The notes beneath the pieces are model-generated. The model did not search any database. It was not told where the DNA came from and saw only the letters and a list, made by a program, of their open reading frames with translations. Positions 19,402 through 20,812 of a stretch of 64,000 nucleotides of DNA are shown one piece after another; the stretch's first letter is position 1; each line of letters begins with the position of its first letter. This stretch comes from Hypanus sabinus (lineage: Eukaryota). Made by a program: the position numbers and the translations under genes. The stretch covers positions 36,270,001-36,334,000 of the forward strand of contig NC_082727.1 of the NCBI RefSeq assembly GCF_030144855.1, read 5' to 3'.

Positions 19402-20812
19402 CAACACTCTGAAGGAATCCCTGTTTGAGAAATTCCGCCAGCTTCAGTGTCACTTCACATGGAATCCACAGAAGGACAACACTGACGTCAGTAACATGAA
19501 GCTTAGATTACAAGATTCTATAAAACTTGGTGTAAAATATCAAGCCACATCCTACAACCATCTTGCTTTTGTAAACTGTCAGCAAGGTGACTATGAAGAA
19601 GCAATTCAAAACTTAAAGGAAGCTGAAAAGATTCTGAGGGAGGAGTACAAAGATGAATTTGAAAGAAGAAGCATCATCACCTATGGAAACTTTGCCTGGG
19701 TGCATTACCACATGGGACAACTGTCCGAGGCCCAGTCCTATCTCGACAAGCTGGAGATGATCTGTAAACCGCTCAGTGATGGCCCTCGCTATACAGCAAT
19801 GATACCCGAGGTGTACGGGGAGAAGGGATGGTCATTGTTAACTTTTGGTAATATTGCTTACTATGAGGAGGCAAAGGAATGTTTTGAGAAGGCTTTGGAG
19901 GAAGATTCTAATAATGTGGAGTGGATTATGGGTTTTGCTACTGCTCTTTATCGTCTGGAAACATTTTCTTTTGTTCCAAAGAATCAGGAGCAGAGTCAGC
20001 CAGTGAAGTATCTGCGACTGGTGCTGGAGCTTGACCCAGATGACACGGTGGCCATGGTTATGTTGGCCCTAAAGCTGCAAGAGTTCAATGACTCAGAGAA
20101 CGCAAATGAATTAATTGAAGAAGCCTTGAGGAAGACCGCAGATCTTCCATATGTGCTTCGCTATGCAGCAAAGTTTTACAGAATAGGACGAGATGTTGAT
20201 GCCGCAATAGGCCTGTTGAAGAGAGGTTTAGAAATTACTCCAAGCTCATCCTTCTTACACCACCAAATCGGTATATGTTACAGGGAAAAACTGTTCAGTC
20301 TGAAAAAGAAAACAGGCAGCAACTATCCTGGCAGATCTGCATTTCAACAGAAAGCTGAGTTGATCAGTAAGTGCAAATATCACTTTGAAAAGGCATTTGA
20401 GCTGAAATCAACATTTATTATCGCCAAACTGGATTTTGCAGGAATCTGCTTAATAAATAGCGAAACAGACCGAGCAGAGGAGATCTACAACAGTCTGCTG
20501 AGCTTGAAGGATCTTGCTCCAGATCATAAGCAGGCACTAGCTTTACAAGTTGGATTATTTGAACTGCACCACAAAAGATCTGAATCAAACGCCATCGTCT
20601 ATTTTCTGGACGGACTTAAAATCTATCATGGAAGTAAACAATGGAAGCTCTGTGACAGTAACTTGAGGAAGATCTTAGGAAAACAAATTGAGAGGAATCC
20701 AAGAAACAGCAAAGCCTTTGGTGTTCTTGGGATGGTGCACCAGCTGGCTGGGGAGAAGGATGAGGCTATTGAATGCTTTGAAAAGGCCTTGGAATATGAT
20801 CCTGGCAATTAA
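19402..20812 (+). CDS. IFIT5-like: IFIT copy A exon 2; interferon-induced protein with tetratricopeptide repeats (IFIT5-like), ~471 aa with exon 1
   Basis: Acceptor cttacatgcag|C at 19401/19402, then an open frame NTLKESLFEKFRQLQCHFTW... continuing into ORF 19496-20812. Motifs: TYGNFAWVHYHMG, EKGW, PYVLRYAAKFYR, LHHQIGICY. The TAA at 20810 corresponds to GAA in paralogs and removes the last helix. Confidence 0.9.

Follow-up and report, generated by a model that had tools for sequence, protein, structure and literature searches.

IFIT copies in the window share an internal tract

The stretch of DNA analyzed here, hereafter the window, comprises 64 kb of contig NC_082727.1 of the Atlantic stingray Hypanus sabinus, contains no runs of N, and is part of a tandem array of IFIT genes. 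Several of these genes share a tract of ~230 nucleotides (nt) in exon 2 that is nearly identical between copies that are otherwise clearly diverged. Exon 2 is open in two copies of the window, A (19402-20812) and B2 (43910-45344), both on the forward strand. Copy A is intact and of type A, with a splice acceptor at 19400-19401 and an open frame at 19403-20812. It corresponds to the NCBI model P0119 (flank identity to Hs_P0119, 100%), and the A clade has a support of 100* on the flank tree. B2 is intact, of type B, and 100% identical to the NCBI model P0002 of Hypanus sabinus. Membership in the IFIT family was assigned by sequence and structure homology: exon 2 of B2 showed full-length homology to human IFIT1 (5w5h; E = 7e-105 over residues 6 to 462) and IFIT5 (3zgq; E = 3e-99), and the sequence LQCHFTW, with the CHFTW motif, was found in both A and B2. 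All of our analyses used exon 2 alone, without joining the few codons of exon 1.

Two pseudogenes lie between the intact copies, also on the forward strand. B1 (24798-26190), a type B pseudogene located 19.1 kb from B2, gave tblastn matches in two frames and carries a premature stop (in LAF*NCL) followed further on by a frame change. D (36677-37736) is an old mosaic pseudogene with several stops and a 1-nt deletion, and its ortholog in Hemitrygon akajei (L001:5398-6466) is found in the same gene order.

The initial annotation of this DNA had counted 5 differences in ~193 nt between A and B2, and about 10 in a wider 245 nt, in genes described as divergent elsewhere. Both counts proved exact (5/193 for A 19647-19839 versus B2 44155-44347; 10/245 for A 19595-19839 versus B2 44103-44347), and the flanks were 56 to 80% identical by sliding identity. 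The peptide quoted for the tract was correct, and so was the statement that both pseudogenes carry the same sequence: B1 (25042-25234) differs from A at 4 of 193 positions and D (36920-37112) at 11 of 193. Across A 19610-19820, sliding identity was 93 to 100% in all six pairs formed by A, B1, D, and B2. The tract spans only nt ~190 to 440 of exon 2; the first 210 nt of the exon are unhomogenized, with A and B2 56 to 78% identical.

Maximal high-identity segments against B1, B2, F2, F3, and Ha_B2 place the putatively converted tract of copy A at 19590-19841, with a core at 19613-19838. The 5' edge varies with the partner, lying at 19590-19613 against B- and F-type partners and at 19655 against D. 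The 3' edge is fixed at 19838-19841, with segments against B- and F-type partners ending at 19834-19841, and coincides with a 3-nt indel and type-specific sequence. In B2 the tract lies at 44099-44348 (core, 44121-44346), and its maximal segment against A corresponds to 19594-19834. In B1 it lies at 25008-25233, where 8 of 226 positions differ from A, compared with 27 to 32% in the flanks, and 5 of 217 differ from Hs_F3. In D, the part that appears to have been reset and is now decaying lies at 36928-37111 (A-equivalent 19655-19838). All four tracts are on the forward strand. A GENECONV-type check had been proposed in the initial annotation; our own implementation of a Sawyer-type run test on polymorphic sites, used in place of the GENECONV and RDP programs, yielded a significant fragment, with the longest concordant runs reaching 36 to 37 sites in every paralog pair within Hypanus (permutation P ≤ 1e-4).

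Read data at the tract

For the 1-kb stretch around the tract, the best read run covered 39% of words, and runs from at least seven organisms covered 21 to 39%. In four runs from three organisms, depth rose sharply over 19606-19843, and at 19838/19839 both contigs and reads split into different continuations. At the tract edges, the short-read contigs of several organisms ended or forked, with k-mer depths from 10 to >100 times those of the flanks; these depths do not convert to copy number, because contig word depths were summed and Hi-C reads pile up at the GATC at 19759-19762. The depth spike and the forked contigs indicate that several genomes contain multiple near-identical copies of the block and that it is no artifact of the H. 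sabinus assembly. Short-read assemblies of such genomes will collapse or break IFIT genes at the tract.

The tract and its flanks have different genealogies

Trees were built from exon 2 of 14 intact genes representing three old paralog types (A, B, and F) in five batoids and one shark. Types A and B were each represented by Hypanus, Hemitrygon, Mobula, and Pristis, and type F was represented by Hypanus (two copies), Pristis, and Amblyraja; one skate-specific gene and one shark gene (Heptranchias) completed the set. Sharks enter the DNA analysis with this single gene, and what is claimed for sharks as a group comes from their proteins. Mh_A2 and Hs_F1 were excluded from every tree and from every estimate of synonymous divergence (dS), as their frame breaks make codon comparisons meaningless. 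The two F-type Hypanus genes, located elsewhere in the cluster (L009:14638-16080 and 24454-25887), are recent duplicates, with a proportion of synonymous differences (pS) of 0.06 in the flanks and no synonymous differences in the tract. A third F-type Hypanus copy (L009:4403-5845) has a frame break, and a second Mobula A-type copy (L007:22176-23609) carries stops.

On an unrooted protein tree of the flanks (114 sequences), the paralog types formed separate starred clades. The A clade contained 13 myliobatiform and 2 Pristis genes, and other clades mixed stingrays, sawfish, skates, and an electric ray. These clades indicate that the paralogs are older than the split between stingrays and sawfish, so that A and B, as far as the flank sequences tell, predate the divergence of Myliobatiformes and Rhinopristiformes, and that type F had arisen before skates diverged. 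An origin of A and B before the split between sharks and rays cannot be supported from this tree, which is unrooted and has a polytomy at the node in question.

The initial annotation had proposed separate trees for tract and flanks, and these gave the contrast that it had predicted for conversion, clustering by taxon within the tract and by paralog type outside it. In the DNA tree of the flanks, clades A, B, and F were each recovered with support of 100/100 and followed species order within. In the tree of the tract (228 nt), the six dasyatid copies of all three types formed one group (86/87) and the two skate paralogs another (90/84); the two Mobula paralogs also paired, with weak support. 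Each topology was rejected by the other data set in approximately unbiased (AU) tests: imposing the flank topology on the tract cost 53 log-likelihood units (p-AU 1e-6), and imposing the tract topology on the flanks cost 1,796 (P about 1e-6). A dasyatid clade forced on the flank data was likewise rejected (P = 5e-35). Separate trees of the 5' flank (210 nt) and of the adjoining 3' flank (its first 300 nt) each kept the type clades (A at 100/98 and 99/96, respectively). The tract is therefore internal, unlike a segment on one side of a crossover, and its shortness does not account for the missing type signal.

Paralogs within a species have lost synonymous differences in the tract

A loss of synonymous differences between A and B2 had been claimed in the initial annotation, with similar dS in tract and flanks named as the outcome that would speak against conversion. 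We found a Nei-Gojobori dS of 0.12 in the tract and 0.88 in the flanks; nonsynonymous divergence (dN) fell from 0.32 in the flanks to 0.03 in the tract. Among paralogs within species generally, tract pS was 0.02 to 0.11, compared with ~0.5 in the flanks. The pooled ratio of tract to flank pS was 0.14 for paralogs within Hypanus (Fisher P = 8e-25), 0.11 within Hemitrygon (P = 7.5e-10), 0.41 within Pristis (P = 1.2e-07), 0.38 within Mobula (P = 4.4e-05), and 0.53 within Amblyraja (P = 0.0089). The corresponding ratio was 1.06 (P = 0.73) for shallow orthologs (Hypanus, Hemitrygon, and Mobula) and 0.68 (P = 0.006) for deep orthologs (comparisons to Pristis and of Pristis to Amblyraja).

Within the tract, paralogs of one species are closer to each other than orthologs of different species are. 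Tract pS was 0.02 between Hs_A and Hs_F2/F3, compared with 0.13 for Hs_A-Pp_A, 0.21 for Hs_A-Mh_A1, and 0.22 for Hs_F2-Pp_F. Likewise, tract dS was 0.07 to 0.12 between dasyatid A and B genes and 0.51 between B2 and the shark gene at equal flank dS (~0.8 to 0.9), a pattern that uniform constraint cannot produce.

Diagnostic sites repeated this division. The flanks contained 66 type-diagnostic sites and the tract none, where 12.6 were expected (P = 3e-6). Five sites in the tract, and none in the flanks, marked a taxon irrespective of paralog type (P = 1e-4). These five sites are nested as the phylogeny predicts: 19692 is diagnostic of stingrays plus sawfish, 19776 of Myliobatiformes, the synonymous site 19741 of Dasyatidae, and two sites of Mobula. 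Site 19776 determines the Ser/Thr of KPLS/KPLT. All 48 myliobatiform proteins (48 of 48) have Ser at this residue, and every sawfish, skate, electric-ray, and squalomorph protein has Thr; on the flank protein tree, the myliobatiform genes that carry Ser fall into at least five starred clades. Only 2 positions of the tract separate Hs_A from Hs_F3, whereas Hypanus and Hemitrygon orthologs differ by ~5%. The nested diagnostic states, together with the near identity of Hs_A and Hs_F3, show repeated events ranging from old to recent.

The B2 ortholog of Hemitrygon (L001 ~12838-12870) has the A-type codons for REEYKDEF in the 5' part of its tract, where other B-type genes have RENHKDEF, and its tract differs from that of Hypanus A by three synonymous and two nonsynonymous changes. 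Sequence of type A thus appears to have been copied into a B gene by conversion in the Hemitrygon lineage.

Pseudogenes carry the homogenized tract

The gene order of Hemitrygon locus L001 (C fragment, D, B2, E fragment) matches that of the window, which indicates that D became a pseudogene before Hypanus and Hemitrygon diverged. Hs_D and Ha_D have nine derived changes in common in A-equivalent 19625-19654; in 19655-19838 they have none in common and carry seven and five private changes, respectively. This distribution indicates that the tract of D regained the family sequence before the divergence of the two genera and has been decaying at the neutral rate ever since. Divergence between the two D orthologs is 5.3% in the tract and 5.2% and 2.8% in the flanks, and this neutral decay argues against a function of the nucleotide sequence apart from coding. 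The tract of B1 differs by 2 to 3.5% from those of A and F3, compared with 9 to 11% between the flanks of B1 and those of its nearest relative, B2.

Pseudogene D is itself a mosaic. Its 5' flank is B-like (12% from B2 and 29% from A) and its 3' part is A-like (19% from A and 26% from B2), and as Hemitrygon has the mosaic too, D is a chimera of some age, perhaps a product of unequal crossing-over.

The tract encodes the most conserved part of elasmobranch IFITs

The tract peptide was nearly invariant in the best 120 elasmobranch IFIT matches, sharks included, while the remainder of these proteins was 62 to 70% identical to B2; it is thus the most conserved part of elasmobranch IFITs. It is recognizable in human IFIT1 at residues ~76 to 150, ending at GWALL with W147. 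The proportion of nonsynonymous differences (pN) was 0.03 throughout the tract, compared with 0.07 to 0.26 in the flanks. Strong purifying selection on the peptide explains the low dN and does not explain the low dS between paralogs. Identity of the tract across distant species had been named in the initial annotation as a sign of constraint rather than conversion; such identity exists for the peptide, and it does not extend to the synonymous divergence between paralogs. The codon equivalent to human K151, a lysine that contacts the triphosphate, lies directly 3' of the tract (19839-19850; 44347-44355), one helix turn past the edge, and encodes T in A and N in B2.

Gene conversion and alternative explanations

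An internal patch with a discordant genealogy, synonymous sites included, recurs in several lineages and includes pseudogenes. Based on these sequence comparisons, we consider it very probable that recurrent interlocus gene conversion has homogenized the ~230-nt tract and has been limited to the segment in which protein constraint is strongest. The tree discordance, the AU tests, and the loss of dS between paralogs agree with the initial annotation, which had proposed recurrent interlocus conversion of one subdomain. As to mechanism, we infer non-crossover conversion, in which the exon 2 patch of one paralog would repeatedly be overwritten by that of another. Conversion of this kind would erase synonymous and nonsynonymous differences together, so that the patch would evolve in concert within each lineage while the flanks diverge by type. 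Purifying selection may keep the patch similar enough for heteroduplex formation between genes that are otherwise 60 to 80% identical, and each conversion would renew this identity and thereby favor the next. Extension may be halted by heterology (the 3-nt indel and type-specific sequence at the 3' edge) or by selection against homogenized flanks. Pseudogenes would also be recipients, with neutral decay setting in once conversion ceases.

Several points weigh against this explanation. Conversion is read here from sequence patterns. The data set holds 14 intact genes at the DNA level out of dozens per species, the pooled Fisher tests rest on nonindependent pairs, and the supports in the tract tree are moderate, none reaching the star threshold. 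When single paralog clades were imposed on the 228-nt tract, the AU tests were marginal (P = 0.066, 0.085, and 0.012); they are underpowered at this length, and the whole-topology test was used instead. Part of the raw identity of the tract comes from selection and not from conversion, as the tract is slower at nonsynonymous sites everywhere. Finally, the synonymous deficit of deep orthologs in the tract (0.68; P = 0.006) is not predicted by conversion alone; candidate contributors are GC-biased conversion, weak synonymous constraint, and flanks that are not strictly orthologous.

This deficit bears on two alternatives of very different standing. If purifying selection acted on both the peptide and its codons, through an RNA or DNA element or codon preference, the tract could be conserved without any conversion. 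The near-invariant peptide with its resemblance to human IFIT1, the tract pN of 0.03, the deep-ortholog ratio, and an elevated GC content at third codon positions (GC3) are in keeping with such constraint. Constraint preserves the genealogy of genes, however, and in the tract the copies group by taxon and the flank topology is rejected; nor does constraint accommodate the spread of tract dS from dasyatid A/B pairs to B2 and the shark, the shallow-ortholog ratio of 1.06, the neutral divergence of the tract in pseudogene D, or the five cross-type taxon-diagnostic sites, one of them synonymous. RNA structure offered no excess either, as the tract folded no better than shuffled sequences (z = +0.42; z = -0.93 for a control stretch of the same gene). 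Minus-strand open reading frames of 155 amino acids overlap B1 and B2, with no counterpart in A, and an overlapping antisense gene was rejected. Reduced dS at all ortholog depths, conservation in pseudogenes, and stable structure, by which a synonymous-constraint element would be recognized, were thus not observed, and the overlapping nucleotide-level constraint that the initial annotation had offered as its alternative did not hold up. Constraint as the sole cause is largely refuted, and we regard it as highly unlikely. It is possible, though we would not favor it, that a second force on synonymous sites, either GC-biased conversion or weak nucleotide constraint, acts in addition to conversion without replacing it. 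GC3 at degenerate sites was 0.56 to 0.60 in the tract and ~0.40 elsewhere in all 13 batoid genes (0.49 and 0.38 in the shark); a raw GC3 peak of 0.77 was partly inflated by Met and Trp codons and was replaced by these values. Tract pS between any Hypanus and any skate copy was 0.18 to 0.28, and the flanks of F-type orthologs stood at 0.44 to 0.46, which together with the deep-ortholog ratio would fit such a force. The shallow-ortholog ratio speaks against it, as do the small counts (39 synonymous differences), the chance that the flanks of the deep "orthologs" predate the species split, and a spectrum of weak-to-strong (W>S) versus strong-to-weak (S>W) substitutions that is unpolarized. The elevated GC3 is compatible with GC-biased conversion and is not proof of it.

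Homogenization could also be false or could have arisen through larger exchanges. Reads of one paralog might, in polishing, have corrected another; paralogous repeats are prone to such error, and short-read contigs collapse at the tract. We give such an artifact next to no weight, given that the pattern recurs in independent assemblies of Hemitrygon, Mobula, Pristis, and Amblyraja, that the copies retain private differences within the tract, that the taxon-diagnostic sites are nested in phylogenetic order, and that the tract of D decays in the ordinary way. Chimeras formed by unequal crossing-over, or a very recent duplication of the part that bears the tract, would be in line with the segmental duplications of the array and with the B-like 5' and A-like 3' parts of D. 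A single crossover leaves one breakpoint, whereas both flanks keep their type in A, B, and F genes of several species, and the A, B, and F orthologs are syntenic and old. Exchange of this kind is contradicted for A, B1, and B2 and can hardly account for the tract; it may be the origin of D. An extension of the conversion hypothesis, which we consider unlikely although less so than the artifact, chimera, or pure-constraint explanations, is that the island is actively maintained, with selection for the same version of the segment in all IFIT paralogs of a species and conversion proceeding from a fixed site at 19838/19839. The segment would then be a family-wide coevolving module that has existed since before the batoid radiation, probably in sharks too, and might serve, for example, as a shared hetero-oligomer interface or a common part of the pocket for the RNA 5' end.

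Comparison with known systems

Recurrent gene conversion in mammalian IFIT1/IFIT1B genes, which the initial annotation had cited as known, is indeed described (Daugherty et al. 2016, eLife 5:e14228, PMC4887208); it affects the gene from its 5' end through two-thirds of its length and stops at a fixed breakpoint. There the tract involves two neighboring paralogs, spans nt 1 to 948 in cat, and ends at the "pivot" between subdomains (PMC4887208). The stingray tract shares with the mammalian case the gene family, the mechanism proposed, homogenization within species that includes synonymous sites, orthologs that diverge evenly, a recurrent fixed breakpoint, and a phylogeny that is confounded unless the converted part is removed. 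It differs in being internal and ~230 nt long, with diverged sequence on both sides, in ending at the W147-equivalent codon, and in occurring in at least three old paralog lineages plus pseudogenes, and in five batoid genera. The mammalian geometry, from the 5' end to a breakpoint at two-thirds of the gene, is not seen here, as the first 210 nt of exon 2 keep the type clades. Within the literature collection searched, no paper on IFIT conversion in cartilaginous fishes turned up.

Interlocus conversion of short tracts is established in vertebrate multigene families such as the globins, the major histocompatibility complex (MHC), interferon-alpha, and the opsins. The batoid tract resembles these in its patch size of a few hundred bases, the mosaic genes, the dependence on local identity, and the participation of pseudogenes. 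It is more extreme than the usual sporadic patches in that one island has lasted over nested batoid clades, and, in a further difference, this island falls on the one peptide most conserved in the family. GC-biased gene conversion raises GC3 in concertedly evolving families, for example, mammalian histone and Hsp70 genes. The batoid IFITs likewise show a local rise limited to the homogenized segment (0.56 to 0.60 versus 0.40); unlike in those families, the rise is modest and the mechanism is compatible rather than demonstrated.

These observations have consequences for work on fish IFITs. Because the tract carries the signal of species and the flanks that of paralogs, orthology cannot be read from whole-gene trees or from the conserved block, and conversion can mimic lineage-specific similarity among IFITs. 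The genes are also natural chimeras, with identical residues ~76 to 150 (human IFIT1 numbering) set in diverged surroundings and with a different residue at the K151 equivalent, and may guide experiments on RNA specificity. The tract may further serve as a worked example of protein constraint and gene conversion reinforcing each other within a confined island over a very long time.

Other features of the array

Two internally deleted IFIT fragments, C (34560-35266) and E (54275-55573), join A-equivalent 19624 to 20337; their deletion begins at the 5' edge of the tract, and the tract is gone. Both have counterparts in Hemitrygon akajei in the same relative places (L001:3268-4044 and 22245-23046, respectively). 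Right after the stop codon of A, a tandem partial duplicate of its C-terminal half (20936-21608) also lacks the tract. Segmental duplications of intergenic sequence (10967-13075 versus 39118-42002 and 29120-32544 versus 46479-50970) are 82 to 95% identical, which indicates that the array grew by duplication of multi-kilobase units. Finally, a 26-nt exact match to A 19700-19725, which includes A's private T at 19724, lies at 14506-14531. It stands 5.2 kb upstream of A in non-IFIT sequence, directly past the end of a dispersed repeat (14437-14502), and may be a templated insertion or a captured fragment.

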